The notes beneath the pieces are model-generated. The model made no database searches, had not been told where the DNA came from, and saw only the letters and a program-made list of their open reading frames with translations. Position numbers and translations under genes: made by a program. A DNA stretch of 64,000 nucleotides, from contig CDRNVI010000027.1 of assembly GCA_977017575.1 (NCBI GenBank), forward strand, positions 62,001-126,000. The letters are read 5' to 3'. This document shows positions 1 through 63,887 of this stretch, in pieces (the stretch's first letter is position 1; the number at the start of each line of letters is the position of its first letter). The stretch comes from Paramoeba atlantica. Taxonomy: Eukaryota; Protista; Discosea.

Positions 1-20
1 AGTCGTTTCTTTGCCTACCG

Positions 21-1519: not shown

Positions 1520-1522
1520 GCA

Positions 1523-6100: not shown

Positions 6101-6335
6101 CTGCGCAGAGTTTGCGTATTGGACGTTGGGTTAACATCATGTTTGCGTTTCTTTCGAGCGCCAAAAATCCTTTTCTGCTCAGGAAACGAAAATCGGTGTA
6201 TTCTCGATGGACCGGACCGCATCTCTCGGCAGTGGATTTGCAGATAGTTCTTGAGCCTCTAAAATCTCTTTCTGCTCGGACCATTTGTGAATTCGCTCGT
6301 GAGGTTTTCTGCGCCACGACTTCAACGGATGACAA
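3118..6335 (-). mobile_element. Family B RLE non-LTR retrotransposon; ORF 3205..5766 (RT, CxxC-H-C knuckle, RLE), preceded by decayed N-terminal tandem repeats
   Basis: Motifs GVRPIAMGE, VDLRNAFN, GVRQGSPLS, FAFIDD, CPGC...HIPGC..C, SGPDLMI...YYDLTV. Confidence 0.92.
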
Positions 6336-15412: not shown

Positions 15413-15467
15413 TAACGATAAAGCTACAGTTTCTGTACCTTGTTGATACAGTTTCTGTACCTTGTTG
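15413..15467 (+). other. Tandem spliced-leader copy heading an LsmAD-element stub (ATG 15500, truncated at about 15612)
   Basis: 33-nt SL, 22-nt relict, 32-nt UTR, then MVLTRSKAKQ...GSWDQFQANKDLVKG. Confidence 0.9.
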
Positions 15468-23235: not shown

Positions 23236-23396
23236 AAGACCCTGTTTTAGAACCCTGTTTTTTTTTTTACATTTGCCGTCTCAAGTATACATTGCGCCTT
23301 ATCACCTGTCGTGATCTCGTCTTCCGGAATATAGTTTTATAAGATAATAACTTGGTACCGAATGAGTAAACAGTTGCGTGGGTGACTGCTTTTTTT

Positions 23397-25983: not shown

Positions 25984-26382
25984 TTATGGCAGAAGAAAGG
26001 GTCCGTTGATTTCGAGATCTGAAGGCTTGCCGTATTCTAGGTGAAACATTCTCATGAAAGGTTTGAAGATCGAAGGCTGTTGTAGTAGGGCTTGAGCAAT
26101 TGCAGTACGATGCGGTGTGTTGTAGGCATTCTTAAAATCCACTGTGAGAATCGTGTAGCCGGCGTCGTGTTCGTCCAAAAGCTCATGAACTATTGATTCA
26201 CACGCATTCCGTTGAAGAATACCTCGCTGCACTGGCTGGAAAAATTTCTCCACTGTATTGCTGTGTCGCATTAAAAGAATCGTTCCGCAGATCTTGAGGA
26301 TAGTGTCTCCCATTGCCCATGGTCGTATCCCGTTTTGAGGTTTTGCTAACGCGATGATCCTGCAGCGAGTTAGGCGTTGACG
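25984..26382 (-). pseudogene. RT N-terminal fragment, family B
   Basis: ALAKPQNGIRP...VDFKNAYN; same subfamily as the 6420-6710 segment. Confidence 0.85.
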
Positions 26383-26409
26383 TTTCTGTACCTTGTTGCT
26401 ATTCTTACC

Positions 26410-26802
26410 ATGATCTTTTTAAATGCCACATCGTCGGAAGATTCGCGTTTTCGTCCGCGATTCAAGGCAATTGGTCGCCGAAGAGAAAAGGAATCGAGTG
26501 TGACGCGCGTCTGCAAAAACGTCGCGTGCTTGTTGAAAGTACGAAGTGATACTTTTCATCTGGAAGGTTTGTTGATGAGCACGGTTAACCCATTTACGCT
26601 CCGGCAAACTAGAAAGATGGAGAGTGTTGCGGAATACTTTCAACGGGCACGTGATGAGATTGTGTATTCTGGAGTGGCGGGAAGTGAGACTTCTTGTCTC
26701 GGAGGTTTGTTGATGAGCACGGATAGCCCCTTTACGCTCCGGCAAACTGAAGAGACAAGAGGCATCGCTCCTGCTGTTGCAGGGTGCACGTCTCTTGCGT
26801 GA
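26410..26802 (+). CDS. SL-headed 130-aa ORF of unknown function with a 46-aa internal repeat
   Basis: SL 16-mer at 26383-26398, 11-nt UTR, ATG 26410. GLLMSTxxPFTLRQT occurs twice. No RT-family motifs. Confidence 0.5.
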   Translation: MIFLNATSSEDSRFRPRFKAIGRRREKESSVTRVCKNVACLLKVRSDTFHLEGLLMSTVNPFTLRQTRKMESVAEYFQRARDEIVYSGVAGSETSCLGGLLMSTDSPFTLRQTEETRGIAPAVAGCTSLA

Positions 26803-27139
26803 CGCACGTCAACTCACCAATTGAACACAACACCGATACATGGCGTTGGACGAAGGTTTAGTCTTGATTACCGATCCGGAAATCTTTTGCTTGTTTTGCT
26901 TTTGCTTGTTTGTTCCTATCACTGGTTTTTACTACTTTGTGCCCTATAAATTCTGACGGCGTCTACTGAGTAACTCTGACTGTGTCTTCCCCCATATCAA
27001 CGAGGAAGGTCATTTATCTGCCATCGGATTCATTCATTCATTCCATTTCCTAAAAGTTTACGGAAAGAATTTACGGAAAGAAAAAGAGGTTTATAAAAAA
27101 AAAATTATGACTGTCTCCGAAATAACGCATTGATATTCT

Positions 27140-31850: not shown

Positions 31851-32716
31851 TCGACTTACTTTGAATTTGAAGATACGATACCAAAAAGAAAAAAAAAATG
31901 TAGCAGTGAATATCGAGAAGCACGGGCACGGTGAGCGATACGGAATTTCCTTATGATTTATTTTGGCGGAGTAGGCACCGCTGAAATACATCAACGTGCG
32001 ATTGGGTTGTAAATGGAAGTAGGACGAGCGAATGGGTGGTCCCCGCGTCACCCGTTCGCAAGCTGGGAGAGGACAGAAGTGTTGTGGGATTATTTAATTT
32101 TGTTATGTTATGACCGGTCATACAGTATTCATATGAATTTTGAATGTGCATAGAATTGAACGTATCAAATATCAGATAGAAGAGGGGAATGAAGATATTG
32201 TTTTGCTTAGTGCTTTCTTTCTTTCTTATAATATTTATGATGCACAATTCTCATAGTTTACGGAGAGAATTGGGCGAATAAATTATTTACGTTATACCAG
32301 TTTATCTATTGTGTGATGGCCGAGGGGCATTGTACCTGTTGTAAGAATTCAACTGATTTGATATATACACCCCCCAGATGTAACCCCATGTGTATACAGA
32401 CGAATATGACGTTTGCTATGGTGATTATAAATTCAAGACTTTATTTCCTTTGTTAATTCGCGACAGTTAAAGTTTCTAATGACCGTGGTTGACGATCCTT
32501 CAACGCGAGCTTTACGGTCGTCGCGTAGTTCTTCCCCTACTGCTGAGTCGCTCGTGCCTACCGAGCCGCTCACGCAGCAGGAATTAAGTCTCGTTTGTAC
32601 GGTGGCCAGAGAGCGATTATTTGTGAAACCCTCGGTGCAGGTGCAGGCATCTTTCCGTCGCAAGGATGATCGTAATGGTGCTCGACAAACGTTGATGGGC
32701 AAGTTGCGCAAGGAAC

Positions 32717-35700
32717 TTCTGTACCTTGTTGGTTTGTTTTTTTTTTCCTACTCTTTTTCCGAAAATGGGCATGCTGACGCGTGCCAAGGCGAAGGATGCC
32801 GGGGTAGCTCCCATAATCAGCGCATTCGTATAAAATTGTATTCGTGAAGATTGAAAAACTCAAATCAAGTGTAAAATACATTAATGTAATCCTACCCTTC
32901 GTCAAATCCATCGAATATGTTTGTACATCAATATATAAAGTATAAAGTAAAACAACATATGTCACTTAGTAGCGCTACTATAATTCATTTTCTCACAGTA
33001 CTAACGAATGGGAAACTACTTCAATAGCCTCCGGGCGGGTGGGTGGGAAAAACACTTCGCTTACTTATGCTAAGGCGCTTTCCTGCTCCCCCGCCCCCAG
33101 ATCGCCACACAGAGACGGTGCCGTTAGAGAAGAAGACGCAGAGGTACCGATCAATGATATAGTTCTGCGGCCGCTAAATCCGTCAGCTCGGATTCTTTCT
33201 GACGAAGAATTCTACCTCCAAAGAAAAGAGCGCAAACAAGCTCGCTGGGAATTTCACGAAGCTTTACGCCAAGAAAGGCTAGCGAAACTCCCCGCTGCAC
33301 AGGACATCGAGTCGCATAGAATTTCTGAGCCGTGTAACACGTCGCCTCTTCCGGAGGAAGTCATCGAGTCGCGTATCACAACTGAGTCTCATACCCCCCA
33401 GCCGCATACCCCACTTCTCCATCCACCGCTCCCTCCGCCAACTCCAGCGAACAAAGCAACGGTTAAAATACCCGCGAAATTGTTTTCGAAGGACCTGTTT
33501 TCGAACCTTTTTTGTCGACGCGGCAAGAAAGCGACGGTAAACGCACCAGTTTTAGCAGATAGAATGCCACAAGATGCAGAAGAGGAAGGACACCACGAGA
33601 ACCCGCCGTCGGAAAACAATAACCATAACGACAGTGAAGAACCAGAACAATTTTTCGACTGCGAAGGAAACGCTGACGACACTGCTTCAGCAAAGACGCT
33701 GGCACTATCTTCGAGTGAGTCGTTGACAATTCTTGCCAACTCCATGTGTCAAGAAATTGATCCTGCTGTTCACTTTCCCATTCCCCCGGACGAAGTATCC
33801 AGATTGTCTGACAACGCGAAGCCAGGGGATCGGTGCCTGGTAGCATGGAGCTTTGACTGCACGCCCATCCTAAACGTATCGAGTGGCACTGTTAAAACAT
33901 CTCGGAAAGTGCGAAACGTTCGAAAACTAGCGTTAAGTTACGAAGGCATCATTGGACACAATATTGGTGAGGTGTTTGATGGGCATATTCCCCCTCATTC
34001 CAACGTTCGCATCTTTCGACTGTTGTGGGAACCGCGCGTACAACAGAATAGCGAACCGAGTAAAACGTACGCGCGCCGACAACATACTGAGGACGATCTC
34101 GATCGCGAACCGATGCCGACATTACGCACAGTGTCTCCAGAATATATTCCTTGCGTCGTTGCGATTTATCGCGATATAATGCGGGAATATGCCGATAGTT
34201 CTTATCCACACCGCTACCGCATCTGGCATAGAGTTCTCTCTGCCATGAAATACTCTCTGGCAACTATTCGAAAAGTTACGGTGAAGCGCCGCCGTCGCCG
34301 TCCATTGGACTCACATGACGATCAAGAATCATCGCAAGAGAATCATGAATTACAAAGATCAGAAGGAACTGTACCGAACGCTGACGCGAACGATAAACGC
34401 GCTATTAAAAAGGCGACAAGCCTGGTCCTCGACGGGTGTGTCTCGAAAGCTTCGCAAATTATGGACCGAGAAATTACGGCGAAATCACTAAGCGACGAAG
34501 AAATCGTGGAAAAACTCATAGCACTCCACCCGAATCTCCCAACGAGTTTCCGATTGCCACAAGACGCCCCTATCACCGCATGCATTACCCCCAGCGAGCT
34601 GAGAGAGGCTGGCAGACGACTCGCGAAAGGTGCTTCACCGGGGCCTACGGGTACGACGGACTCGATAATACGTATTCTCCTGGACGATGAGGTTTGCTGT
34701 TTGAGCTTAACTCATATGTTCACAGACCTGATCAACGGGGTACTGCCTGAAGAAGTAATGAAGCGTCTTAAAAGAGCGCGACTCGTCGCAATTCCGAAAA
34801 CAGCGCAAGGAATTCGACCGATTGCCGTAGGTGAGGTGTGGCTCAAAATCGCCGAAATTGTATTACTACAGCGCCACGAGAAAACATTACCCCCTCTGTT
34901 TTCGCCACATCAGTTCGGAGTGATGATTAAATCTGGCTGCGAAAAAGTTGTGCATGAACTTGATGAACGCTACGCGGAAGGATGCGCCATCTTATCGATT
35001 GACCTTAAGAACGCCTTCAACTCCCCATCACGGGACGAGATTGCCAGAGCAGTCTTTGGATTCCACAGCCTACGTCCATTCTTACGCCTCTTCAATGCGG
35101 AGTACGGGTCTCCATCCGAGCTGCTTTACTATGGAAAAGATGGCCGACTTTGCAACACTGTAATGAGCGCTGCTGGCGTGCGCCAAGGGTCCCCCTTATC
35201 CACTATCTTGTTCTGCGCTTTTCTTCAACCAATCTTGGAAACAATCGCGTCCGAATTTCCCACGCTACGTATTTATGCATTCGTTGATGACATCAATTTT
35301 GCATCGACTGACGCAGAAATGGTATCCAATGCATTCTTACGGCTTAAGGAACTGTTGACGTCGAAACGCGTAGAGACTTCCTCCAGTAAATGTATTTGGT
35401 TCGGGGGAATCAATCATATCCCTTTGCCGCATCAGTTAATGCAGGAAGGTGTAAACTGGGAGCCAGGCGCCACAAAGGTTCTAGGAGCATTCGTGGGCGA
35501 CAGTCATCTGGTCAGCGAAAAACTTGTTCAGATGCTTCAAAAACACCGTACAGCATTCCGACGTCTTCAGCAAATGGGGGCAAACAATGCTTCTGTTCTT
35601 TTGCTTTCCAAGTGCATTAATGTACGCCACCGATATCATATCCGCGTACATCATCCGGAAAATACATCGGAGCTCACGAGACAATTTGACGGAGAAGTTT

Positions 35701-37002
35701 CCAACACTCTTTCCTCATGGTTTGGCGGACTAACAGAAAAACAAATCTCATGGACACGGCTTCCTCTTAAGAAAGGCGGGTTAGGTATCACTCCTTCCGA
35801 ACCAATTAGGGAAGCAGCGTATACTAAATCCAAGCAAATGGCAACGGAGCGACCAATATATCTTTCAGCTCCCGCCCCTTGCACGGGTTTGGCCACACAG
35901 CTAACTACTCAGCCAAATCATAATAACCCTTCCGCCGATGAGCCAACAACAGAAGACCTGCACCACAAATACATACGCGACAAATTGATGGAAGAACCAC
36001 GCCAAGCCGACATATTACGAGCTACAAGTGCTAAAGGAAGTTACACGTGGCTGGCCTCCTCCACCAGATTAGTGCCCAGCAGACTATTCACCCTTGCGGT
36101 AATGCCCCGTTTTGGACTGGCACATCCCAGACTCCCTGCACACCTACAGTGCCCCGGGTGTCACACCTTGCTGACTTCCGAGAACGCTATTTCCCACGTG
36201 GCTGGATGCTCGACTTGCACTGGTAACAACGCGACAACGAAGCACAACAAAATGGTCCACAGACTGTATGAATTATGCATCAAAGCAGGCATTCCTTGTG
36301 AACGAGAACCCCGGCAGTTCTCTACGTACACGTGTGTCAAATGTGGAGCTCATCTGGATGGGGATTCTAAACCATCACACCAAAGGATCTGCGGATCAGG
36401 ATCTTTTCACCACTCAGGGCCGGATCTAGTTATTCACTGGGCCGACGGAGACGTATTCTACGACTTCACCATTGTGCATGAACTATGTCCTTCGAATTTA
36501 ACGCGAGGCGGCACAATCCTTATGAGGGACGCCATTAAACGGAAGAACAAGACGTACGTAGCCTCAAAACTGCTCCCCCAAATCCAATTTCAGTGCATAC
36601 CGATGCTTGCAGGAGGAGCTATGCACGCTAACACAAAGAACCTACTTCTCGCTTTAGCCGACGCGTGTGGATTAGCGCGGGATTACGTGATCCAAGATTT
36701 TACACTTCGATTACAAGAATTAAACGGATCGGTTGTTCTCTCGCAACTTGGCAAATTTCTAGTGCCGCAGAGCCGAGAAGATACGGCGATTTAATCAACC
36801 ATTCTTTATTAATTATGAAAACTTGAGAAAGTAATTTTGGTTCCGGCTCAACACATGAGAGAAAATCATATTATTCATTATCTGAAAAGACCGGTCATAT
36901 TATGTAACTTTATGGTAATTGATAAAAAAAAAAAAAAAGCAGGCTTCGCAGAAACTATAAAACTATCAATATGGTACTATATAGTTACTATAAAAAAAAA
37001 AA
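32717..37002 (+). mobile_element. Full-length SL-headed family B element inserted in YR gag; two poly(A) tracts (36924-36939, 36992-37002)
   Basis: SL 15-mer 32717-32731, ATG 32765 (MGMLTRAKAK). An AT-rich insert of about 210 bp at 32812-33024 separates it from the long ORF. Confidence 0.9.
33039..36794 (+). CDS. Family B polyprotein (Tudor-like N-domain, RT, knuckle, Zn finger, RLE); native N-terminus at 32765 is cut off by an insertion
   Basis: 1251 codons open. GIRPIAVGE, GVRQGSPLS, YAFVDD, CPGC..HVAGCSTC, SGPDLVIHW. Confidence 0.9.
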   Translation: MGGKNTSLTYAKALSCSPAPRSPHRDGAVREEDAEVPINDIVLRPLNPSARILSDEEFYLQRKERKQARWEFHEALRQERLAKLPAAQDIESHRISEPCNTSPLPEEVIESRITTESHTPQPHTPLLHPPLPPPTPANKATVKIPAKLFSKDLFSNLFCRRGKKATVNAPVLADRMPQDAEEEGHHENPPSENNNHNDSEEPEQFFDCEGNADDTASAKTLALSSSESLTILANSMCQEIDPAVHFPIPPDEVSRLSDNAKPGDRCLVAWSFDCTPILNVSSGTVKTSRKVRNVRKLALSYEGIIGHNIGEVFDGHIPPHSNVRIFRLLWEPRVQQNSEPSKTYARRQHTEDDLDREPMPTLRTVSPEYIPCVVAIYRDIMREYADSSYPHRYRIWHRVLSAMKYSLATIRKVTVKRRRRRPLDSHDDQESSQENHELQRSEGTVPNADANDKRAIKKATSLVLDGCVSKASQIMDREITAKSLSDEEIVEKLIALHPNLPTSFRLPQDAPITACITPSELREAGRRLAKGASPGPTGTTDSIIRILLDDEVCCLSLTHMFTDLINGVLPEEVMKRLKRARLVAIPKTAQGIRPIAVGEVWLKIAEIVLLQRHEKTLPPLFSPHQFGVMIKSGCEKVVHELDERYAEGCAILSIDLKNAFNSPSRDEIARAVFGFHSLRPFLRLFNAEYGSPSELLYYGKDGRLCNTVMSAAGVRQGSPLSTILFCAFLQPILETIASEFPTLRIYAFVDDINFASTDAEMVSNAFLRLKELLTSKRVETSSSKCIWFGGINHIPLPHQLMQEGVNWEPGATKVLGAFVGDSHLVSEKLVQMLQKHRTAFRRLQQMGANNASVLLLSKCINVRHRYHIRVHHPENTSELTRQFDGEVSNTLSSWFGGLTEKQISWTRLPLKKGGLGITPSEPIREAAYTKSKQMATERPIYLSAPAPCTGLATQLTTQPNHNNPSADEPTTEDLHHKYIRDKLMEEPRQADILRATSAKGSYTWLASSTRLVPSRLFTLAVMPRFGLAHPRLPAHLQCPGCHTLLTSENAISHVAGCSTCTGNNATTKHNKMVHRLYELCIKAGIPCEREPRQFSTYTCVKCGAHLDGDSKPSHQRICGSGSFHHSGPDLVIHWADGDVFYDFTIVHELCPSNLTRGGTILMRDAIKRKNKTYVASKLLPQIQFQCIPMLAGGAMHANTKNLLLALADACGLARDYVIQDFTLRLQELNGSVVLSQLGKFLVPQSREDTAI

Positions 37003-40792: not shown

Positions 40793-40793
<1 letters not shown>

Positions 40794-40823
<30 letters not shown>

Positions 40824-45148: not shown

Positions 45149-45168
45149 ACGATAAAGGTACAGTATCG

Positions 45169-48100
45169 TAACGATAAAGATACAGTTTCTGTACCTTGTT
45201 GAATTCTTTTCTTAATCTTTCTCACGTTCCATGGTTCTAACTCGCTCTAAAGCAAAACAGGAATCCAACTTTGATCGCGAAGCACAAGCTCGAGAGGGCG
45301 CGCACAAGCTCGGTTCATGGGACCAGTTTCAGGCAAACAAAGACCTGGTTAAAGGCGCTAGCACATACAAGGAAGAGCTGTACACGACACCACTTCCGCC
45401 GGATCCTTCATCAGAATTAGAACAACGGGCCGAAGACATTGCCCTCAGCATTACGAACTCCATCGAAGGCGTGACACCAGACACAGGGCGTCAGCAAACG
45501 AGCTCGGAAGAAGAATTATTTTCCAGCGTCCGTCCCACCGAGAATTCCGTTTTCCAGTTTTTTTTTTTTTTTTTTTTTTTTTGCTATTCACAAATGTCGC
45601 TTGCAACACTTATGACCACGGAGAGACGGGCGAGACGTGATCTCCTTTACCCCCCATTATCTTCCCTCTACCTTATATCCCATACCGTAAACTTATAATA
45701 GCTATATTAATTATACTTTTTTTTTTCTTCAAGTTTCCAATGTTTTTGTTTTTAATGTCAAATTCTAGAGGCCCATGTTTTGTGAATCGTCATTAGATAA
45801 AAAATTTCTCAGCTGAGAGAATATAATCGACCCATTTAACTCCTGCAGGCACAGAGAAAATTCGTTCAGTGTTCGGACCCTATCAAGTCCGCTGCAGTCC
45901 GCCAACGTATGCAACAAGTGCCGGAGCCCGTGATGCATAGCACCACCGGAGAGGACTGGGAGGCATACGAAACGCTCTTGAGGTATCATCCCGGAAGCCA
46001 CGTATGTGCTGTGCTTGCGCGTAATGGCCTCTCTCATCAGGGTACCGCTACGTTTCCGTGCATTAGTGGGCGCCAGCTCGTGAATTATTGTTAGGTCATA
46101 AAAGATTTCCCCAGTTGCCCAATGTATTACAATGTCAGGTCCTGACCGATGGAGGCTCGCATTTCTACAAACTTTTTGATGATCAGTTTTTCGCCATTGT
46201 GGGAACGATTCCCCGCATGTAGAGCATTTAAAAGAAGTAAACTGTCGAGGTTCCCTTTCGCATGGCACACCCGCCTTCATGCACAGTTCATAGATAATAC
46301 GCACCAGATTATTATGTTTCATTGTTGTATTATTTCCGGAACACTGGACGCATCCAGCTATGTGCGAAAAGGCTGATGAAGAATCCAGAAGGGTGCGACA
46401 TCCTGGGCATTGCAGACTTTCGGGAATACGAGGGTGGCTTAGACCAAGACGTGGCATCAAAGCTAATGTGAAGAATTTGGAAGGCACTAACTTTGCCGTC
46501 GAATGAAGCCACGCGGAGTTCCCTTTTTCACTTGCTGCTCTCAGCACTGGTGCAATTTTCGGGTCCTTACTCAACGATTCTTTCTCCAGTTCGAAGGGGC
46601 CGCTCCTTCTTCACTCAGCCAATCGAAATCTACAAACAAGGCTGTGAAGGAGAAATGCGAGCGCCACAACCGGGGGATAGCTCGTACCGAATACAATTAT
46701 GACGACGACAAATTAATTTTCCCCGACCTGACGCCTCAAGACCTCGACTTTTCGTTGAGCGGTGGAACCAAAGTAAGGAAAAAGAAAAAGCGCCCTAAAG
46801 GGATCTCACTTTCCCAGCTACATACCCAGTTATGCACCGAGTCTGGGGGCGACAGTGATGACCGTGACTCCACAGATGCGTCAACAAGTGTTCACAGCTC
46901 TCCGGCTGAATCACCCCTGAAGAAGTTAACCCCGAAAACGGCTGTAGGCAAACGTAAACGTCCCCAGCAGGTGTCGAAAACTACCTCCCCTGACGCCCCC
47001 AAAGCTGAAACAATGAACAATGCCCCCGAACCGACCCCAACCCAAAACTGTGCGATAGAAAAAACACACACCACGCATGAAAATACGCGAAAATGTCCCT
47101 TCGAGGGATGTACTTGGAAAACAGGGCCCCACGGGGGCCAATGGCAGGCATTCCACAACCACGTAGCAAACAGACACGGTGATGAGGTCCCAGACGAGTG
47201 GTGGAAAGACGAAGGACGTTTTAGGTGTCATGATTGCAATAAACATTATGATCAAGGCAAACGGGAAACCCACGACAAGATCTGCATGTTCCGCCATTCC
47301 TCTCCTCAAAGCCGTCCGTCGCCCTCGACGAGCAGTGCCGATCCTGTTCTAAGCCCCAATGTGGACTCGAATGCTCTGCCTGCCCTTAACTCACCTTCCA
47401 CACCCTCTCATCAAAGCGTAGTAAGCGAAAACGTGAAAGTCTCCGACACACCCCTTCCGAGTTTATCCTCTATCAGTGCGCTACTTATTAACACTTGCAA
47501 GGACATCCCCAACAGTTGCCGACAAGAATGGGCTAAAACACTCTGCGGTTGCTTATCCACAGCAGCGAGAGAGAACACGCTCGAGGCATGGACACTCCTC
47601 GCCATGCTGCCCAAATGCGTCCTACCCGCCCCTCATCGCGGAGGTAACCGCGCAAAAGCCTCTTACGCCTCCCATGTAAAGAAGTGCCTCGCGAGATGGT
47701 CCAACAAAGATTTCCTGGCGCTTTGGAAAGAAGCTGTCTCGAGTGTATCACGCAAAAAGAAAAATGTACCACAAGCGCTTACCATAGACGAAGAAGTAAA
47801 GAAAGCGGCTTTACGGGCAGAACGGCTTGTCCGCGACGCGGAGCTCTCCCGCGCCATGACAGCATTAACTTCGGAACCACTTGCCCCTGACGACGACGCC
47901 ACCTACTCGAAGCTCCAGGCAAAGCATCCTCAGAGACTTGACAGCACTTTCAACGTGGCAAGCCCTTCAGCGCCGGAAGCAAAACCGCTTGAAGCAACGG
48001 AAGACGAAGTAGCCGAGGCCCTAGCGACTTTCCACCGAGGGTCCTCGGGAGGGGCCTTCGGTATGCGGCCGGAGCACGTTCAGGCCGCGATGCAGTACCA

Positions 48101-50509
48101 TCACGACGCGTACACCGATCCTCTGGGCACGCTTACGAAGTTTACCAATCACTTGCTCGCAGGAAAAGCACCGTTGGAAGTCAAAGATTATTTTGCGGGT
48201 GGTCGGTTATGCGCCCTGAAAAAGGGTGAACACGATGTTCGTCCAATTGCTGCCGGAGAGACCCTTCGCCGCTTGGCAAGCAAAGTTGCCTGCCTCTCCG
48301 CAAAATTCAAGGCCCGAAAACTCTTCAGAGGGCACCAGTACGGCGTAGCCACACCTGCTGGAGCCGAGCGCATCATCCACCTCTGTCGGAAGACCTTCGC
48401 CGAACATATTGAGGATGACGACTTCCTGCTATGCAAAGTCGACCTCAAAAACGCTTTCAATAACGTCTCACGGGATTTCTTTGTGGCCCTAACACGCCAG
48501 CATTTCCCTGAGCTGGGTGCGTACGTGGAGTGGTGTTACAACACTCAAAGCATTCTGACCTTTGGCTCACGCTTTATCGAATCATCTGAAGGGGTGCAAC
48601 AAGGCGACCCCCTGGGCCCTCTGCTCTTTTCGCTTGTGATGAAAGAAGTTTCCCTACAAATCCACACTGCCGCTCCGAAACTCGCTTTAAACCTGTGGTA
48701 CTTAGACGACGGGATACTTGCCGGTCCATCCTGCGACGTTCGGCACGCACTAGACGTGATCGCGATGTCCGGCCCGAAATGGGGATTGCATATCAACGTG
48801 GCCAAGTGCGAGATCGCAACACACCCAGCTTCCTCCCATCGTTGCTCACTTTTCCCTGACATCCCCGGTCTGAACACGAATTCGGCAGGAAATTTTCATA
48901 TTTTGGGGAGTCCAATTGGTTCGACAGAATTTTGCCGCGAATTCTTTCTCAAGAACACAATCGACATGGCAGAGGCCTCTCTCGAGGCCATAGCTACACT
49001 TGAAGATCCCCAGGTGGCCCTTTCCCTCATACGCCACTGTACTGGTTTCTGTAAAATGGTTTACTCGCTCAGGACTACCCCGACAACGGAACTTCAAGAT
49101 ATCTGCCAACGCTTAGATGGTGCCGTCCAGCGCACTATTGAACACTTCTTCCGTCCTTTGAGTGATGGGGCGCGACGCCAGGCGCAACGCGAAAAGCGGT
49201 ACGGGGGGTTGGGCCTTCGGTCGGCGGGGGAACATTCGAGTGCGGCTTACGTTGCCTCCGTAGCTTTCTCAACGGACAAAGACCGTTGGGACCCAGCGGA
49301 CGCTGAGGGCTTTGACCATGCCGTGCGGGAGGTGAACAGGCGTGCCGGAAAGACGGTGGTCCAACAAGGCGGCAAAATTCCGAAAAGTATGGCTTTGGCG
49401 ACTGATTCTCCGTATACCGACGCGCAGGAATCCGGAACAGAACTGGTGATTCCCCGACAACGCGACCTTAGCCACGCCATCGCCAACCAGGAATTTCACG
49501 AGGCATTTGCGAAAGCTGACCTTCGCACACGGGCCAGATGGATATCAGAAACAGGAGAAGGAGCCTCAGAATGGGCTTTTGTGATCCCCTCCAAGAAAAC
49601 CGGTCTGGCTTTCACACCGACGGAGTTTCGCACCCTCACGCGCTGGTGGCTAGGGGACCCAATCTATCCAGCGTCCCGGCCTTGTCCTATGGAAAAATGC
49701 ACGCTACCGCTAGATCCCGAGGGTGACCACGCTCTGGGGTGCAAAAGCGGGCATGGTATAATCGCACGCCACAACGCACTAGCGGCACAGTTTACTTCTG
49801 AATGTAAAAAGGCCGGTTTCACCCCGCGGAGAGAAGTGAGTCTGGGCAACAAGGGTCCTGGGGGCGCCCTCACCAGGCCCGGAGACGTGTTCATCCCTAC
49901 AATCGGGCTAGGCCAGTCTCTTGTATTAGACTTCGCCGTCACTCATGTTCAGCAACCAAAGTATACGGACTTAGTCCGTGATGCTAACTGGGTGACGGCG
50001 GGGTCTTTTGCGGAACGATACGCCACCGAAAACAAAAAGAAGCAAAGAGAGGAAGCAGAGTTCGCACGCCATCGATTTGGAGCGATGGTCGTGGAATCTT
50101 ATGGAGCGTGGAGTCCAAGCGCCTTTGCGATCCTCAAGGAGGTTTCCGTCTCTCGTGCGGCATACTCCGGGGGTACCCTTTCGAACGGGGAAGTCTTACA
50201 CCAATTGGTGACGTCACTTAACATCACTCTGATGCGGACACAGGCTCGGATGCTGGTACTCCGACTTCCCGCGGCGGTCCCTGACACGGCCCTCCTTGGA
50301 TATGGGAACGATGAGTAATTCGGTCCCCCCCAATCATTTAACAGCCGCAGGGGGGGGAGGGTGTTTCTCTGCGAAAGGGGGGGGGCAAGGGGGGGTACCA
50401 AGTCACTAACCGACGTGCCGTCACGGGTCTTAGTTTTGGTGCGGGAGTGATTTGATTAGGGGTGGATTTCGGGTAGAATTGTTTGCTAGTTTTTAGTCAA
50501 AAAAAAAAA
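45169..50509 (+). mobile_element. Full-length SL-headed family A element with N-terminal LsmAD; reconstructed ORF 45231-45559 + 46592-50318 (1351 aa)
   Basis: Full SL 45169-45201. Removing 45560-46591 joins ENSVFQF to EGAAPSS in frame. C2H2 fingers, GVQQGDPLGP, WYLDDG, RPGD. Confidence 0.9.
45560..46584 (-). mobile_element. 5'-truncated family B 3' end inserted in the LsmAD element
   Basis: Poly(A) (T-run from 45558); TSD TCCAGTT at 45553-45559 and 46585-46591; ORF 45765..46574 encodes knuckle plus RLE. Confidence 0.92.
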
Positions 50510-53440: not shown

Positions 53441-53527
53441 AGATTTTTTTTTTTTTACCTCATGAGAAAGTTTTCAAGTTGAAAGAGCTCCATCCTACAT
53501 TTTTTTTTTTTTTCTCAAATGTGAGAC

Positions 53528-56500: not shown

Positions 56501-59500
56501 TTTGGCGGAGTAGGCACCGCTGAAATACATCAACGTGCGATTGGGTTGTAAATGGAAGTAGGACGAGCGAATGGGTGGTCCCCGCGTCACCCGTTCGCAA
56601 GCTGGGAGAGGACAGAAGTGTTGTGGGATTATTTAATTTTGTTATGTTATGACCGGTCATACAGTATTCATATGAATTTTGAATGTGCATAGAATTGAAC
56701 GTATCAAATATCAGATAGAAGAGGGGAATGAAGATATTGTTTTGCTTAGTGCTTTCTTTCTTTCTTATAATATTTATGATGCACAATTCTCATAGTTTAC
56801 GGAGAGAATTGGGCGAATAAATTATTTACGTTATACCAGTTTATCTATTGTGTGATGGCCGAGGGGCATTGTACCTGTTGTAAGAATTCAACTGATTTGA
56901 TATATACACCCCCCAGATGTAACCCCATGTGTATACAGACGAATATGACGTTTGCTATGGTGATTATAAATTCAAGACTTTATTTCCTTTGTTAATTCGC
57001 GACAGTTAAAGTTTCCCCACCCGCCAAACCCCCTAACCACTCCCCGCGTCACCCGTTCGCAAGCTGGGAGAGGACAGAAGTGTTGTGGGATTATTTAATT
57101 TTGTTATGTTATGACCGGTCATACAGTATTCATATGAATTTTGAATGTGCATAGAATTGAACGTATCAAATATCAGATAGAAGAGGGGAATGAAGATATT
57201 GTTTTGCTTAGTGCTTTCTTTCTTTCTTATAATATTTATGATGCACAATTCGATAGAAAACTCTGAGAAGCAACAAAAAGGCAACAAGACCACAGGGACA
57301 CAAGGAGTACGCACGGCACTGAAGAAACTAGTCAATGACGAGCACGAAAAACTTGCGGCAGAGCTGAAAACAAAACCACGTTTCAGTGGAGTTATGAAGC
57401 GCTCGAAGGAAGCAAATTTTCATCTCCTCTCGACCAACAACTACGTAAACCCGTACCTCTTCCAGCAAACGCTCAAGATGAGGCTGGCCGTCAGTCTCCC
57501 TTCTTCGAGTAATATCTCCTGTCCTGGATGCGGGGTCAGTGAATCGCCCTCCGGAATATTTCCACACGTTGCAGGTTGCTCGAAATGTGCTGGGATGAAC
57601 TGTACGAGAAAACACTCACACATTGTTCGATACCTTTCAAATCTATGTGGAAAAGCTGGACTCCCATGTGCGGTGGAACCGCGTCTGTATTCATCGTTCT
57701 TTTGCACGAAGTGTAAGTGCTCTATTTCACCAGAAGCAGCGGAGAGACACCCATGCAGAGCTCGTCGTATACGTTCGGGCCCCGATCTGGCCATAATGTG
57801 GCCAGATATTGGAGAAGTCCTCTACGATGTCACAGTCGTACGATAAAGGTACAGTATCGTAACGATAAAGATACAGTTTCTGTACCTTGTTGAATTCTTT
57901 TCTTAATCTTTCTCACGTTCCATGGTTCTAACTCGCTCTAAAGCAAAACAGGAATCCAACTTTGATCGCGAAGCACAAGCTCGAGAGGGCGCGCACAAGC
58001 TCGGTTCATGGGACCAGTTTCAGGCAAACAAAGACCTGGTTAAAGGCGCTAGCACATACAAGGAAGAGCTGTACACGACACCACTTCCGCCGGATCCTTC
58101 ATCAGAATTAGAACAACGGGCCGAAGACATTGCCCTCAGCATTACGAACTCTATCGAAGGCGTGACACCAGACACAGGGCGTCAGCAAACGAGCTCGGAA
58201 GAAGAATTATTTTCCAGCGTCCGTCCCACCGAGAATTCCGTTTTCCAGTTTTTTTTTTTTTTTTTTTTTTTGCTATTCACAAATGTCGCTTGCAACACTT
58301 ATGACCACGGAGAGACGGGCGAGACGTGATCTCCTTTACCCCCCATTATCTTCCCTCTACCTTATATCCCATACCGTAAACTTATAATAGCTATATTAAT
58401 TATACTTTTTTTTTTCTTCAAGTTTCCAATGTTTTTGTTTTTAATGTCAAATTCTAGAGGCCCATGTTTTGTGAATCGTCATTAGATAAAAAATTTCTCA
58501 GCTGAGAGAATATAATCGACCCATTTAACTCCTGCAGGCACAGAGAAAATTCGTTCAGTGTTCGGACCCTATCAAGTCCGCTGCAGTCCGCCAACGTATG
58601 CAACAAGTGCCGGAGCCCGTGATGCATAGCACCACCGGAGAGGACTGGGAGGCATACGAAACGCTCTTGAGGTATCATCCCGGAAGCCACGTATGTGCTG
58701 TGCTTGCGCGTAATGGCCTCTCTCATCAGGGTACCGCTACGTTTCCGTGCATTAGTGGGCGCCAGCTCGTGAATTATTGTTAGGTCATAAAAGATTTCCC
58801 CAGTTGCCCAATGTATTACAATGTCAGGTCCTGACCGATGGAGGCTCGCATTTCTACAAACTTTTTGATGATCAGTTTTTCGCCATTGTGGGAACGATTC
58901 CCCGCATGTAGAGCATTTAAAAGAAGTAAACTGTCGAGGTTCCCTTTCGCATGGCACACCCGCCTTCATGCACAGTTCATAGATAATACGCACCAGATTA
59001 TTATGTTTCATTGTTGTATTATTTCCGGAACACTGGACGCATCCAGCTATGTGCGAAAAGGCTGATGAAGAATCCAGAAGGGTGCGACATCCTGGGCATT
59101 GCAGACTTTCGGGAATACGAGGGTGGCTTAGACCAAGACGTGGCATCAAAGCTAATGTGAAGAATTTGGAAGGCACTAACTTTGCCGTCGAATGAAGCCA
59201 CGCGGAGTTCCCTTTTTCACTTGCTGCTCTCAGCACTGGTGCAATTTTCGGGTCCTTACTCAACGATTCTTTCTCCAGTTCGAAGGGGCCGCTCCTTCTT
59301 CACTCAGCCAATCGAAATCTACAAACAAGGCTGTGAAGGAGAAATGCGAGCGCCACAACCGGGGGATAGCTCGTACCGAATACAATTATGACGACGACAA
59401 ATTAATTTTCCCCGACCTGACGCCTCAAGACCTCGACTTTTCGTTGAGCGGTGGAACCAAAGTAAGGAAAAAGAAAAAGCGCCCTAAAGGGATCTCACTT

Positions 59501-59825
59501 TCCCAGCTACATACCCAGTTATGCACCGAGTCTGGGGGCGACAGTGATGACCGTGACTCCACAGATGCGTCAACAAGTGTTCACAGCTCTCCGGCTGAAT
59601 CACCCCTGAAGAAGTTAACCCCGAAAACGGCTGTAGGCAAACGTAAACGTCCCCAGCAGGTGTCGAAAACTACCTCCCCTGACGCCCCCAAAGCTGAAAC
59701 AATGAACAATGCCCCCGAACCGACCCCAACCCAAAACTGTGCGATAGAAAAAACACACACCACGCATGAAAATACGCGAAAATGTCCCTTCGAGGGATGT
59801 ACTTGGAAAACAGGGCCCCACGGGG
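53528..59825. repeat. 6.3-kb direct duplication, copy 2 (family B 53647-56388, YR right end 56389-57251, SL 57860-57892, LsmAD element 5' part to 59825)
   Basis: Same ORFs as 40847-47136; extra 10-nt TAATTTTATA duplication near 53600. Confidence 0.95.
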
Positions 59826-62800
59826 CAAGCAAGGAAACGGGTCATCAGGGAGAAGGCGATTAACCATCATGCGGGCCTGAAGGCGCATGAGGGTCACGTT
59901 TAACTCCGTGAAGATTCTGCTCGTCGCCCCCCCTTCTGTCAATAACCCGCACGAGGCGTGCGAAAGCCGTTCTCCAACTTTACGGAGTACTGCGGATGCA
60001 CTGCTGCTCCACGCACCGTAGCTCTCCACCACCATGGCGGTGAAGGCACAGCCGGCTTCTTCAGATTCGTGTCTCTGCTGGCCCTTTTGCGTTGATGAAT
60101 ATTGTTCAGCAAATGACCCCGCGGTTACCCAGCTAGCATTCCGGACTTTGTCCGTATATTTTAGTTGCTGAGCATGGGTGACCGCGAAGTCAAGTACAAT
60201 CGGATTCCCCAACTGGAGACCGGGCAAATAGACATCGCCGGGTCTGGTGAGGGCGCCCCCTGGGCCTCTGTTGCCAAGACTTTTTTCTCGTTGTGGGGCC
60301 AGTTTGGCTCTGCTGCAAAGGTCGGCGAACTGATCTGCCACGGCATTATGCCTCGTGATAATTCCATTGCCGTGTTTGCAGGACAATGCGTGGTCCCCTT
60401 TGGTGTCCAGTGGGAGAGAACATTTCGGCATAGGGCATTTCCCTTCTTCAGGGTAGACGTCGATCCCTAACCACCAGCGGGCCAAGGTTCGAAACTCTGT
60501 AGGAGTAAAGGAATACCCCATGTCCTTAGACGGGGTTACAAAAGCCCAACTGCTTGCCCCTTTCCCGCATTGAGATATCCATCTTGTTCGTGTTCGCACA
60601 TCTGACATCTCGTACGAATGAGAGAAATCATAGGCCGCGATCGCGTAGCTGATGTCTCGTTGGCGTGGAATCTTCCCTTTCCTCCATTGTGGTGGATCTG
60701 TATCAGTACAATCCTCCGAGGCATATAATGGTGTAGATAAGTGGATATCTTCAGGGATGTGCATGGTGCGGGAAGTTGTACGGAGCGCGGGTGGTAGGGA
60801 GTTCTCTGAGGGAGGGTTATCGTTGACACTTAGGGTACGTTTCCTTTTTCGGTAAAAGAAGGGACTACTAACTGCTTTTTCGCAAGGGGCGTTCGGCGTT
60901 GTAAGGATCCGACCTCGGGGATCAAGTAAAGATGTTCCAGCTTTCTGGTTGATGTCCCTGACAGCTTCCACAAATCCATCCGCATCAGAGGGGTTCCATG
61001 AATCTTTGTCCGCAGAGAAGGCGACGGAAGATACGTATGCGGCAGTGGCGTGTAACGCTGCGGATCTTAACCCAAAACCGCCGTGCCGCTTCAAACGTTG
61101 TGCCTGAGATCGGGCGTAGGGGTCCAGGGGGCAAATTATAGCTTCGATGGCGGTCATAAGAAAATCGTCGAGTCGGGCGCAGAGATGGGCTATGGTTTGG
61201 GGTGGTGTGCTTCTCAGGGCGTAGACCATCTGGCAGAAACCGGCACACTGCCTGATAAGAGCAAGTGCAACCTGTGGGTCCCGAATGGTGGCGATCGCGT
61301 CGAGCGTATCCTCAGCGGGGCCTATGGCGTGGATCGCGAGATACTCTGAGCAGTGTTCGGGCGATCCCACCGGGCTTCCAAGGATGTCGAAATTGCCATG
61401 GACGTTGATCTTATTGACGGGTATGTCTGGAAATTCAGAGGCGTGGTGTGCCGAGGTCGGGGGTGTAATGATCTCGCATTTAGACATGTTAAGGAATAAG
61501 CCCCATTGCGGACCTACTCTGGCAATCGTGTCGAGGGCGTTCCTGACGTCTTGCGCCTGGCCAATGAGGACACCGTCGTCGAGGTACCACAGCTGGGCGA
61601 AGAGGTCCGCCTGAAGATCGATTGCTTCTGAGAGCGCTAAGGACACTAATGAGAAGAGTAGCGGTCCTAAAGGGTCGCCCTGCTGCACTCCTTCTTCGGA
61701 AGAAAGTGATCGGAGTCCGTAGGTAAGGGAGCTGGGATTTGCGTAGCACCAGTTTATCCATGGGAATAGCTCAGGGAAATGTTCCTGGACTAGAGGTAGA
61801 AAGCAAGCTCTGCTCACGTTGTTGAACGCGTTCCGGAGGTCAACTTTGCATAGTACAAAATTGGGGCAATCCATGTTCGATGAAATAGCCAAGCGGCACA
61901 TGTGGATTATGCGCTCAGCCCCTGCTGGTGTAGCTACACCATATTGCCGACCAGCGAAAAGAGTACTAGCTTTGGACCGAACCGCGTTGCACGCAGCCTT
62001 GCTCACCAACCGTCTCACAGTTTCTCCTGCGGCAATTGGGCGGACGTCGTTTTCGCCTTTCTCTAAAGCGCACAGCCGGGCTCCAGCAAAGTGGCTCTGT
62101 ACTTCCACTGGTGCTTTTCCCGCTAGGAGGTGATTCGCCAGCTTCGTTAGAGACTGGAGTGAATTAATGTTCTTGCCTCCGTGGGTAAGTATCGCCGCTT
62201 GTAAGTGCTCGGGGCGCAGTCCCATTGTGCCCGCGGAGGAGCCTCGGTGAAAACCCCTTACCGCCTTCTCAATTTCGGATTCATCCAACTCCAGGGGTGC
62301 TGCAGCGGGGAAGTGGTTGACGCTCCCAGGGATGAGCAGACGGCAGGGGTGTTTTTCTTGTAGCTTAGAGAACGTGGCATCATCGTCCGGAGCCATTGGA
62401 TCCGACGTTAGAGCAGCCATGCCTCTGGAATATTCCCCCTGCCGAACGAGGAGTTCTGCCCTTAGTGTGGCTTTCTCTTCTTCATCACTAACCTCGGTAG
62501 GGGTTGCTTCCTTTTTGCGGTAGGTCGTCAAGGCCTCTTTCCAGAGGAGGGAATAATCCAACGCAAGCCAACGCTGCATGCAACTGTAGGCGTGGGAAGC
62601 ATATGCCATGTGGCCTTTGCGGCCTCCACGGCGTGGGGCGGGGAGGACACATTTGGGTAGCATGGCCAGCAAGGTCCACGACTGCAGTGAATTGTCTTTG
62701 ACGGCGTTATCCAAGGTCTCCGTAAGAATTTCACCCCACAGCTGGCGGCATCGATGTGGTACGTCCTTGCATGTACTAAGCGGTAGCGAGCAGATAGTTG

Positions 62801-63806
62801 ATAAAGATGGAAGCTCAAGCTGAGTGATTCCGGCTCTCCGTCCTGGGCTCTCCGCGTCAGGAAGGGTTTGCGCATGAAGCTCGGATGGCGGAGAGGCCAT
62901 TGTTGCTTTGCAGCTATGGGAGTGATATGAACGTTTGTTTTTGTCGTAGTTTCGCCCGCAAGAAGAACAAAGGAAGCGACCTTCTACATCCCACCACTCT
63001 GCGGGAATGCTGCTTCCGTGCCGGCAAGCGACGTGGTTGTAAAAAGCTTGCCACGACCCGCCGTGTGGCAAGCTCCGCCATGAACATCCCTGAGCCGGGC
63101 ACTGTCGAGAATCGTCTCCGTTGAGGGGAAAAGATGCGCCTTGTGATCCGGAGTACCCATCTTCCTGTTGTCCTTGACTCAATTCTGCTGAGACAGTGTT
63201 CTCTGCAGAATTGGTTGCTGGGGGCATTCCTCGTCGTTGCGATGGTGGGGGATAGGGGGCAGCTTGGTCGTGAATCGTGGATCCAGCGGACGCAGTCTGT
63301 ATTTGGGTTGTCGTTAGTTGCGTCGAACATGGATCAAGCTCCATTGCAAGCAAATCTTCCCTATCGCGTAACTCATTGTCGTGTACCCTATGGTCCGCCT
63401 CTTCCGTTTTTCTGAAAGTGGTTTTCTCTCGCGTCTTGGGAGTTTTTATGAGGCCTCGAATGTGCCCTTTAGTACAAGGAGATGAGGTGGATGCTTTACG
63501 CCGTACAAACTTCTTTGCAACAGAATCTTTGTCAGACTGTGGTGCTTTAACCTCGTGACCTGGGCCGATGAGCACCCGAGAGTGATTCATTTCTTCGTCG
63601 CTTCCATCTTCGCGTCCTGTGTCAGGTGTCGGTTTTCCGTGTGAAATCGAATCAGCTTTTTTGCACCAGTCTTCAGGGATATTCGTAGGAATGGGAGTGG
63701 TGTATAGAAGTTCGTTGTAGGTACTCGGCTGGTTAATGAGGTGCGCATTACCTTCAAATTGATCCCAGGATCCTGTTTTATGAGTCGACTCCTCTTCGCC
63801 GGTCAT
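59670..63806 (-). CDS. Family A polyprotein (LsmAD, C2H2 fingers, RT, CCHC, RLE); native sequence ends about 59826, where it reads into the neighbouring duplication
   Basis: Full SL 63855-63887, ATG 63806 (MTGEEE). No internal stops. GVQQGDPLGP, WYLDDG, RPGDVY...LDFAVT. Confidence 0.9.
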   Translation of the reverse strand: MTGEEESTHKTGSWDQFEGNAHLINQPSTYNELLYTTPIPTNIPEDWCKKADSISHGKPTPDTGREDGSDEEMNHSRVLIGPGHEVKAPQSDKDSVAKKFVRRKASTSSPCTKGHIRGLIKTPKTREKTTFRKTEEADHRVHDNELRDREDLLAMELDPCSTQLTTTQIQTASAGSTIHDQAAPYPPPSQRRGMPPATNSAENTVSAELSQGQQEDGYSGSQGASFPLNGDDSRQCPAQGCSWRSLPHGGSWQAFYNHVACRHGSSIPAEWWDVEGRFLCSSCGRNYDKNKRSYHSHSCKATMASPPSELHAQTLPDAESPGRRAGITQLELPSLSTICSLPLSTCKDVPHRCRQLWGEILTETLDNAVKDNSLQSWTLLAMLPKCVLPAPRRGGRKGHMAYASHAYSCMQRWLALDYSLLWKEALTTYRKKEATPTEVSDEEEKATLRAELLVRQGEYSRGMAALTSDPMAPDDDATFSKLQEKHPCRLLIPGSVNHFPAAAPLELDESEIEKAVRGFHRGSSAGTMGLRPEHLQAAILTHGGKNINSLQSLTKLANHLLAGKAPVEVQSHFAGARLCALEKGENDVRPIAAGETVRRLVSKAACNAVRSKASTLFAGRQYGVATPAGAERIIHMCRLAISSNMDCPNFVLCKVDLRNAFNNVSRACFLPLVQEHFPELFPWINWCYANPSSLTYGLRSLSSEEGVQQGDPLGPLLFSLVSLALSEAIDLQADLFAQLWYLDDGVLIGQAQDVRNALDTIARVGPQWGLFLNMSKCEIITPPTSAHHASEFPDIPVNKINVHGNFDILGSPVGSPEHCSEYLAIHAIGPAEDTLDAIATIRDPQVALALIRQCAGFCQMVYALRSTPPQTIAHLCARLDDFLMTAIEAIICPLDPYARSQAQRLKRHGGFGLRSAALHATAAYVSSVAFSADKDSWNPSDADGFVEAVRDINQKAGTSLLDPRGRILTTPNAPCEKAVSSPFFYRKRKRTLSVNDNPPSENSLPPALRTTSRTMHIPEDIHLSTPLYASEDCTDTDPPQWRKGKIPRQRDISYAIAAYDFSHSYEMSDVRTRTRWISQCGKGASSWAFVTPSKDMGYSFTPTEFRTLARWWLGIDVYPEEGKCPMPKCSLPLDTKGDHALSCKHGNGIITRHNAVADQFADLCSRAKLAPQREKSLGNRGPGGALTRPGDVYLPGLQLGNPIVLDFAVTHAQQLKYTDKVRNASWVTAGSFAEQYSSTQKGQQRHESEEAGCAFTAMVVESYGAWSSSASAVLRKVGERLSHASCGLLTEGGATSRIFTELNVTLMRLQARMMVNRLLPDDPFPCLPRGALFSKYIPRRDIFAYFHAWCVFFLSHSFGLGSVRGHCSLFQLWGRQGR

Positions 63807-63854
63807 ATTAAAGGAACCGCGTACCTGCAAAAAGATGGAATAAGGAAAATAATT

Positions 63855-63887
63855 CAACAAGGTACAGAAACTGTATCTTTATCGTTA
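63855..63887 (-). other. Full spliced-leader exon copy
   Basis: Reverse complement TAACGATAAAGATACAGTTTCTGTACCTTGTTG, identical to 23203-23235 and 45169-45201. Confidence 0.9.

Follow-up and report, generated by a model that had tools for sequence, protein, structure and literature searches.

How does one short sequence come to stand at the 5′ ends of many different retroelements? The question is raised by a 64-kb stretch of DNA (C27:62001-126000) from a 45.7-Mb assembly deposited as Paramoeba atlantica, in which a 33-mer or its 3′ part recurs upstream of open reading frames (ORFs). The whole stretch is called the window here, and coordinates refer to it unless a contig (C number) is given. 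Our analysis identifies the 33-mer as part of the host spliced-leader (SL) exon. It further indicates that the exon has probably been written into DNA at the 5′ ends of R2-like non-long-terminal-repeat (non-LTR) retrotransposons of the restriction-like endonuclease (RLE) type, and of shorter retrocopies, from SL-bearing, polyadenylated RNAs.

The recurrence of the motif in the window is far beyond chance. The 20-mer ACAGTTTCTGTACCTTGTTG occurred 10 times at ≤3 mismatches, against 0 expected from 100 shuffles, and the 14-mer core TTCTGTACCTTGTT occurred 13 times, against 0.01 expected from shuffles, always a few dozen bases 5′ of an ORF start. The full motif is TAACGATAAAGATACAGTTTCTGTACCTTGTTG. 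Copies of at least 33 nt lie at 45169-45201(+), 57860-57892(+), 63855-63887(−), 23203-23238(−), and 15413-15445(+). The remaining copies are 3′ stumps of 15 to 17 nt, at 9050-9065(−), 15864-15878(+), 26382-26398(+), and 32717-32731(+), and mirror copies of those at 15413 and 15864 are found at 1916-1971(−) and 1505-1519(−), respectively. Two large duplications, one direct (40841-47136 = 53522-59825) and one inverted (1-4239 = 13144-17382), inflate the count, so that the independent copies number 8, not 13. Every copy terminates in ...CCTTGTTG and is followed by a distinct T/C-rich leader of 11 to 48 nt and then an ATG. A preliminary description of the window had reported both the 11- to 48-nt distance of the 33-mer or its 3′ part from ORF ATGs and the shared end followed each time by a different pyrimidine-rich untranslated region (UTR), and all copies printed in context agree. 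The sites that it listed are real, but it overlooked the copies at 57860, 1916-1971, and 1505, which lie in the duplications.

A genome search for the motif followed by GT returned two classes of sequence: a tandem gene that has GTATGAGAAGC after the motif, and a dispersed short family that starts with a motif stump. The tandem genes are SL RNA genes, with 38 exon-intron junctions at which the exon is followed by GTATGAG. They form arrays with periods of 1.45 to 2.7 kb on C3, C11, C24, C74, C97, and C107 (regularly spaced on C97 and C107), are linked to 5S rRNA genes recognized by Rfam, share a constant 5′ flank (...GTTAACTTTAACG), and run to the ends of their contigs. An Rfam scan of an SL array matched 5S rRNA only, with no match to an SL RNA family. 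In contigs from one probable RNA run, the SL lies at contig position 4-39 and is followed by non-element sequence. The 33-mer is therefore the 3′ part of the true host SL exon, as the preliminary description had claimed, and the gene that it had proposed to look for, with an exon ending in the 33-mer and then GT, exists in about 38 copies. A literature search did not find the exact leader sequence in searchable papers. The second, noncoding class consists of a variable SL stump followed by GTACATTTT..., which places GT immediately behind the leader, the arrangement seen in the SL RNA gene; it occupies about 140 genome sites (L001-L005, L008-L010), one of them in the spacer of the SL array on C74.

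If the window copies were remnants of a target site, SL intron or intergenic sequence should flank them, as the preliminary description had pointed out. Such flanks are absent. The 2.7-kb SL array unit matched the window over the exon only, with a longest match of 36 nt (CTT plus the 33-mer, 23203-23238), and with the same unit no SL intron or spacer sequence was found around the window copies. Further, 33 of 34 SL RNA gene starts run on into an intact gene, and the SL intron occurs 39 times in the genome with a single orphan. Target-site remnants were thereby ruled out.

The SL stands at the head of elements with a recognizable coding capacity. Pfam found RVT_1 in 9 window ORFs, and these sort into two families. 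Family 1 comprises elements A (ORF at 59670-63860, −), B (46503-50318, +), and C (19097-21559, −), in which N-terminal LsmAD or Cys/His motifs are followed by reverse transcriptase (RT) and a C-terminal C..C..H..C, RHN, PD, and D..V block. Family 2 comprises elements F (33039-36794, +), E, and D; it has the family-1 layout in a different sequence, with the same C-terminal motifs readable. The best solved relatives of the element proteins are R2 structures (9nl3, 9dou, 9nl2, and 8gh6). A profile of 18 family-1 relatives aligned with R2 structures in two stretches at an E value of 6.7e-30, and in the second stretch (residues 791-1158 of 9nl3_A; E = 1.7e-09) the CCHC, RHN, PD, and D columns correspond to the zinc knuckle and the RLE. 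No APE domain was matched by Pfam in the window ORFs, and an Rfam scan of the window that included ribozyme families gave no match. By these alignments, the elements classify as RLE-type, R2-like non-LTR retrotransposons. The preliminary description's assignment to the RLE class is thus borne out over both the RT and the CCHC/RLE region. Its label of CRE-like found no backing: there was no named CRE/SLACS protein among the 120 + 22 listed relatives, in a comparison made without reference CRE sequences, and the insertion into SL gene exons that defines those elements was not found. Relatives of the family-1 proteins are widespread in metagenomes and also occur in a sponge.

Element B illustrates the arrangement. 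Its full 33-nt SL (45169..45201, +), which matches the SL gene at 100% over the exon only, is preceded in the context reading by a partial SL piece of 16 nt plus ATCG (45149-45164). The body (45202..50509) opens with a 29-nt T/C-rich leader and an ATG at 45231, continues through an N-terminal ORF piece (45231-45698) and the RT-CCHC-RLE ORF at 46503-50318 (Pfam RVT_1; R2 profile match including the RLE), and closes with a 3′ UTR and an A11 tail (50499-50509). The N-terminal piece carries an ataxin-2-type LsmAD domain (Pfam E = 1.3e-07), and distant metagenome relatives (P0019, P0024) have a PABP-type MLLE/PABC domain in its place; both domains would point to the biology of poly(A) messenger ribonucleoproteins. 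An opening peptide, M-(G/V)-x-x-T-R-(S/A)-(K/R)-A-K, is common to both families and occurs at the ORF starts at 45231, 9017(−), 32765, and 23179(−), as well as in L019, L038, L039, L043, and L045. Its codons vary synonymously, which indicates conservation at the protein level.

To define the unit that is inserted, a filled site can be compared with its empty counterpart. Element F (32716..37000, +) consists of C plus the last 15 nt of the SL (32717-31), a T-rich leader, an ATG at 32765, the RT-RLE ORF, and poly(A), and it interrupts one of two 100%-identical tandem copies of a tyrosine-recombinase-type (YR) retroelement (27770-44560). The empty site reads ...AAGGAA/GGTCTTG at 28236/28237 (the slash marks the insertion point). 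In the filled site, ...AAGGAA is followed by C, 15 nt from the 3′ end of the SL, the T-rich leader, ATG, ORF, 3′ UTR, and poly(A), and then by AAGGTCTTG. The flanks of the two sites are 100% identical, and the target duplication is AA. The inserted unit therefore spans everything from the SL stump to the poly(A) tail, and insertion into other elements, which the preliminary description had suggested, is directly visible. Element F is 98.7 to 99.3% identical to other F copies. Its N-terminal ORF is broken by a segment of about 237 nt; an intron was considered and rejected, as the segment is a replaced stretch. Together with the A11 and A16 poly(A) tails of elements B and C and a 5′ truncation series of 13, 17, and 23 nt in one subfamily, this site carries the signature of target-primed insertion. 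Three matching repeats were also noted (31850-32476 = 43698-44324 = 56389-57015).

The same association extends across the genome. The exact 33-mer without a following G occurs 355 times. A census of the 3′ 16-mer of the SL, with a pattern that admits three quarters of contexts, gave 896 copies, for a total of about 1,100 to 1,200. At least 896 of these 16-mer copies lie outside the genes and are followed by dozens of different leaders; this is the genome-wide tabulation of downstream sequences that had been proposed earlier. DNA contigs from independent runs showed a pile-up of about 100-fold on the SL bin, with poly(A)-rich loose ends before it and many T/C-rich ends behind it. Tandem arrays of SL-headed element pieces, with periods of about 2.28, 3.9, 5.09, and 4.9 to 9 kb, were noted from search coordinates only (C21:231-11702, C22:137400-155719, C83:343814-360151, C1:9751-25062, and C4:247634-275371).

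The 5′ boundary of these copies was read in 100 listed contexts, which comprised 7 genes and 93 copies. Of the latter, 81 start at CTTTAACG, and homology to the gene's 5′ flank stops there. The base preceding CTT is T in 43 copies, A in 26, C in 9, and G in 3, where the SL gene has A. This pattern fits what is expected of cDNA ending at the first nucleotides of an RNA, as in pseudogenes of the SL RNA, and by analogy with the trypanosomatid cap 4, a modified cap-proximal A would fit the scatter at the first base. Retro-pseudogenes of unspliced SL RNA (L017, L018, L019 [−], L020 [−], and L016/L021) are indeed present. They consist of exon, intron, and an A tail, are dispersed among unrelated flanks, and likewise begin at CTTTAACG, showing that the retrotransposition machinery copies SL RNA too.

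Shorter stumps may have a structural cause. A hairpin, TACAG-UUU-CUGUA, is predicted in the SL with its loop at the position of the 15- to 17-nt stumps, and single stumps of that length beginning in the loop occur at 9065, 15864, 26382, and 32717 in the window and in L064 and L068. Irregular heads are also common. Some have an extra 5′ SL piece before a full SL (45149-45164; L029, L032, and L043), one has an inverted SL piece (L046), and others abut foreign poly(A) tails; about 30 of the sampled copies lie directly behind an A-run. The irregular heads would fit either end-to-end template jumps like those of R2 or insertion into A-tracts. End-to-end template jumping is a known property of the R2 enzyme, and the behavior seen here is in keeping with it.

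These irregularities might tempt one to place the SL entirely at the cDNA level, with RT switching templates from the end of an element RNA that lacks the SL to an RNA that has it, but this is barely credible, because the SL-leader junction falls at the same nucleotide in every copy of a subfamily and the acceptor RNA would have to end exactly at the 3′ end of the exon.

Evidence that trans-splicing took part comes from tandem relicts. A genome-wide search for two SL 3′ ends within 30 nt of each other identified about 25 independent loci. At 13 of these, a full SL is followed by exactly TTTCTGTACCTTGTTG, the 16 nt that come after ACAG in the SL. At one more, the window copy at 15413, a full SL is followed by a 22-nt relict (15446-15467) cut after AAAG. 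ACAG and AAAG contain the sole two AGs in the SL leader. One locus, L060, has three layers: the SL, 16 nt, and 10 nt. The relict lengths are precise (exactly 16 nt in 13 cases, 15 nt in one, and 17 nt in one), while single stumps are more spread; this precision points to splicing rather than enzyme stalling. Relicts cut at internal AGs imply that SL-headed copies were transcribed in longer precursors, trans-spliced at the AG of the relict, and then retroposed once more. Some loci have shorter repeats (the last 10, 7, or 4 nt of the SL), which do not fit an AG. The outer SL at 15413 has a C variant that is absent from the SL genes, in a search whose pattern excluded the window copy itself.

Taken together, the data are best explained by a cycle with several steps. 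The RNA that is reverse transcribed would resemble a mature host mRNA, with the SL, a short T/C-rich leader, an ORF, a 3′ UTR, and poly(A). Target-primed reverse transcription would copy it to, or almost to, its first nucleotides, often halting in the SL hairpin loop to leave 15- to 17-nt stumps, and new copies would often land at, or jump onto, the poly(A) end of another element. The first joining of the SL to an element RNA presumably occurred by trans-splicing. The SL would since have become a heritable part of the elements, and transcripts of SL-headed copies would continue to undergo trans-splicing, at the two AGs that the relict leader contains, and to be retroposed in turn. There is good support for the retroposition, into other elements, of RLE-element RNAs that bear the leader and are polyadenylated. 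We consider it probable that SL-bearing, polyadenylated RNAs are the source of the DNA copies as a whole.

How a single leader is regenerated in each cycle is harder to explain, and several findings weigh against this account. Searches for source copies were anchored on the leader and not on the SL, to avoid bias. The B-type leader gave 13 matches, 11 of them independent, and all 11 are preceded by the SL (5 by a single full SL, 3 by an SL truncated at 23, 17, or 13 nt, and 3 or 4 by tandem or irregular forms). In the A-type group, which spans at least 4 subfamilies, all 51 leaders are preceded by the exact SL 15-mer, with 0 substitutions in 765 SL bases. Three independent F-type copies all have SL stumps. 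No SL-less source copy with a native acceptor was found in the assembly by the leader-anchored searches for the A and B types. The junction TTG/AATTATTTTC... is common to subfamilies whose bodies are only 67 to 74% identical, and since it has no AG, the same junction cannot be remade by splicing. A polypyrimidine-CAG inside the A-type leader, a candidate acceptor, is used by 0 retrocopies, and a search of the 30 nt 5′ of full relict SLs found 0 copies with a new SL. The tandem forms of SL plus relict, which are expected from resplicing of SL-headed copies, make up only about 1 to 2% of copies. That all copies of the A and B types bear the SL, that the junction lacks an AG, and that tandem forms are few indicate that, in most cases, the single leader of the template was already present in the DNA of the parent copy.

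Four further observations belong on the same side. An SL gene variant on C11, with C for A at exon position 25 in two genes of a 297-bp subrepeat (L014:3776 and 6669), was found in no retrocopy genome-wide, although the variant genes may be silent or young. No element RNA was seen in the one small probable RNA run, which was available as contigs for the SL bin only and left element B uncovered. A family-2-like lineage has a fixed 270-nt extension 5′ of CTT plus the SL in at least 10 copies; this segment (L039:1231-1500, L066:2350-2619) is GC rich, contains a twice-repeated 21-nt motif, does not itself begin with a leader, and may be a captured promoter or a 5′ transduction. Finally, at L022 (C41:279500-287500, with the fusion listed at C41:280825; SL exon end at position 1378 of L022), 963 bp of an SL/5S array unit, covering the promoter region and the exon, passes at the precise end of the exon into a family-1 element, which shares 99.2% identity with a dispersed copy flanked by poly(A). 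That element is interrupted after 1.3 kb by a family-2 element with a truncated-SL head, and the array fragment is itself preceded by 27 nt of poly(A) belonging to a different element.

The preliminary description had proposed that the SL is acquired by trans-splicing and carried into the genome, and that the elements would need no promoter. The first proposal holds in part: tandem relicts at SL-internal AGs show that trans-spliced RNAs were retroposed, but fresh acquisition at the TTG junction in each cycle has no support, as 51 of 51 and 11 of 11 copies already bear the SL. For the same reason, and because the junction ends in TTG and the downstream AG goes unused, independence from a promoter is not established.

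If the leader is usually coded in the parent DNA, element RNAs could simply start at it, either by internal initiation or from sources fused to SL genes. The host mini-exon would then be a heritable, functional 5′ module that mimics the 5′ end of a host mRNA without trans-splicing. This general possibility is unlikely, and so, to differing degrees, is each of its two specific forms.

According to the first form, after one ancestral capture the DNA-coded SL became an internal initiator, or a module that defines the 5′ end; RNAs start there and pass as host mRNAs, and trans-splicing is occasional. Such initiation would account for the SL-bearing state of 51 of 51 and 11 of 11 copies and the unchanged SL across subfamilies with differing leaders. 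It would also explain the junction without an AG, the unused downstream AG, the absence of a new SL 5′ of full relicts, and the scarcity of tandem forms, and it sits well with the many copies behind A-runs. A parallel exists in Pr77, an internal RNA polymerase II promoter bound by the SL-gene factors TBP and SNAP50 (PMC1874656, PMC8190864). The dispersed copies, however, lack the upstream sequence of the SL gene, and the variation at their first base, which true SL RNA pseudogenes also show, is in keeping with a template whose nucleotides next to the cap are genuinely modified. The elements of another kinetoplastid, seen in metagenome contigs (described below), carry the SL of their own host, which fits acquisition from the host, although selection could also explain it. 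We judge internal initiation of this kind to be unlikely.

The second form places a source copy behind the promoter and exon of an SL gene, in the manner of SLACS, CRE, and CZAR, so that its RNA starts with a DNA-templated SL without trans-splicing and the dispersed copies are dead-end offspring. One such fusion exists, at L022. It would account for the single leader, the fixed junction without an AG, the invariant SL, and the absence of SL-less sources, and more fusions could be hidden, as the SL arrays end at contig ends. Against this, just 1 of 34 SL gene starts is fused, no other fusion appearing with 3 mismatches allowed, and a family-2 insertion disrupts the L022 copy. The SL is found on more than 20 distinct leader families. 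There is one orphan intron genome-wide, and the arrays on C97 and C107 are regularly spaced. The fusion could also have arisen by homology-guided 5′ joining of an SL-ended cDNA near an SL gene, and the tandem relicts at internal AGs require trans-splicing anyway. SL-gene-driven masters are thus a quite improbable source of the copies. Retroposition of SL-bearing RNAs, with the leader first joined by trans-splicing, remains the explanation that we favor.

Further SL-headed features occur in the window. A second copy of the SL and the 5′ part of element B (57860..59825, +) falls within the direct duplication of 12.7 kb (53522-59825 = 40841-47136), and this copy breaks off at 59825. It abuts element A (59826..63887, −), which has its SL at 63855-63887, a 48-nt leader, and one long ORF; the 3′ end of A is missing, and the junction with the second B copy lies inside the C-terminal region of that ORF. 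Element C (18987..23238, −) has CTT plus the SL at 23203-23238, ORFs at 21710-23179 and 19097-21559 (the latter RT-RLE), and its A16 tail at 18987-19002, and it adjoins the poly(A) end of a family-2 remnant, 19 nt apart. A 5′ fragment of a B-type element (15413..15614, +; mirror, 1769-1971, −) carries the full SL with one C variant and the 22-nt relict. Among family-2 forms, element D (6003..9065, −) is rearranged and has a 16-nt SL 3′ end (9050-9065), a T-run leader, and an ATG at 9017, and the 5′ part of a family-2-like element (15864..16795, +; mirror, 588-1519, −) has a 15-nt SL head. A short unit of about 720 bp without RT (26382..27104, +) has a 17-nt SL head, an ATG 11 nt later, and an A-run end.

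A similar architecture was found in another organism. A metagenome scan with the family-1 profile recovered three near-identical contigs (L081-L083) of a GC-rich kinetoplastid. Each contains an RLE ORF, a 3′ UTR, A6-11, then the organism's own leader, and then the same downstream leader sequence. The SL is the canonical 39-mer AACTAACGCTA...CAGTTTCTGTACTTTATTG; one contig has it in full, and the other two retain 23 nt and about 10 nt of it. A second species, with an SL of its own, thus shows the same architecture. A 2A-like motif, DIETNPGP, is encoded downstream of the leader in L083, in the ORF at 3235-4731, and at L082:6224 the tail is followed by the 5′ part of the SL only. In GC-rich contigs L073 and L074, which also contain relatives, no kinetoplastid-type SL was found; L075 was considered as a relative from another species and rejected, as it belongs to the same species. 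Contigs L095, L103, L124, and L130 of WLWD01, with family-1 relatives, share a repeated motif, ...CGCCATTTGTGCTCAAG, that may be a chance occurrence or a terminal repeat. It has 2 mismatches in 15 to what we take to be the dinoflagellate leader, which may also be chance.

In kinetoplastids, the spliced leader supplies the cap and 5′ end of every mRNA, and individual genes lack promoters. Element DNA that begins with the leader would be a solution to this 5′-end problem that is not described for kinetoplastids in searchable papers. A literature search of such papers did not find SL-headed retrotransposons in Euglenozoa, and it found relict leaders tagging retroposed genes for dinoflagellates only. 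The roughly 1,100 leader copies also form a genomic record of reverse-transcribed RNAs, of points at which the enzyme stopped (the cap-proximal base and the hairpin loop), and of AGs accepted by trans-splicing. The regeneration of a single leader at a junction without an acceptor is now a sharply posed, testable question.

Four known systems invite comparison. R2 provides the nearest solved structures over RT and the C-terminal CCHC/RLE region, but the elements described here have no ribosomal DNA target and no ribozyme recognized by Rfam, and they have poly(A) tails and an N-terminal LsmAD. The CRE clade (CRE1/CRE2, SLACS, and CZAR of trypanosomatids) likewise consists of poly(A)-bearing RLE non-LTR elements of kinetoplastids that encode zinc-finger motifs, RT, and RLE and are associated with the SL; one copy here is fused to an SL gene. 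CRE, SLACS, and CZAR insert at one fixed position in the exons of SL RNA genes (PMC12278014). Here, in contrast, the SL genes are intact, and the copies are scattered, frequently at A-runs or within other elements, with the complete 3′ end of the exon, not a target half-site, at the head of the element. The Diplonema genome paper lists SLACS-like RTs without an SL-head feature.

Pr77 of L1Tc/ingi is likewise a short conserved module at the extreme 5′ end of kinetoplastid long interspersed elements and their partners resembling short interspersed elements, and it solves the promoter problem in a polycistronic genome (PMC1874656, PMC8190864). Pr77 is element specific and yields unspliced transcripts, whereas the module here is the host mini-exon and any promoter role is putative.

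A further parallel lies in dinoflagellates. Slamovits and Keeling reportedly described relict SLs in dinoflagellate retrogenes and the recycling of mRNA in 2008. Relict SLs in the DNA mark retroposed genes in that group (PMC5585692, PMC6050394, PMC12014239). In both systems, a DNA-coded host SL joined exactly at the 3′ end of the exon heads retroposed units, and tandem relicts cut at an SL-internal AG record repeated trans-splicing and retroposition. The host here differs in being a kinetoplastid-type euglenozoan, and instead of host genes it is mostly autonomous RLE retrotransposons, together with their short partners, that bear the tag. With TTG at its end, the SL here cannot be its own acceptor; few copies are tandem forms, and the SL-leader junction has been passed down through diverged subfamilies. 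The elements thus link two ideas that have been separate: the leader-tagged retroposition of dinoflagellates and the association of CRE and SLACS with SL genes, which has been explained differently.

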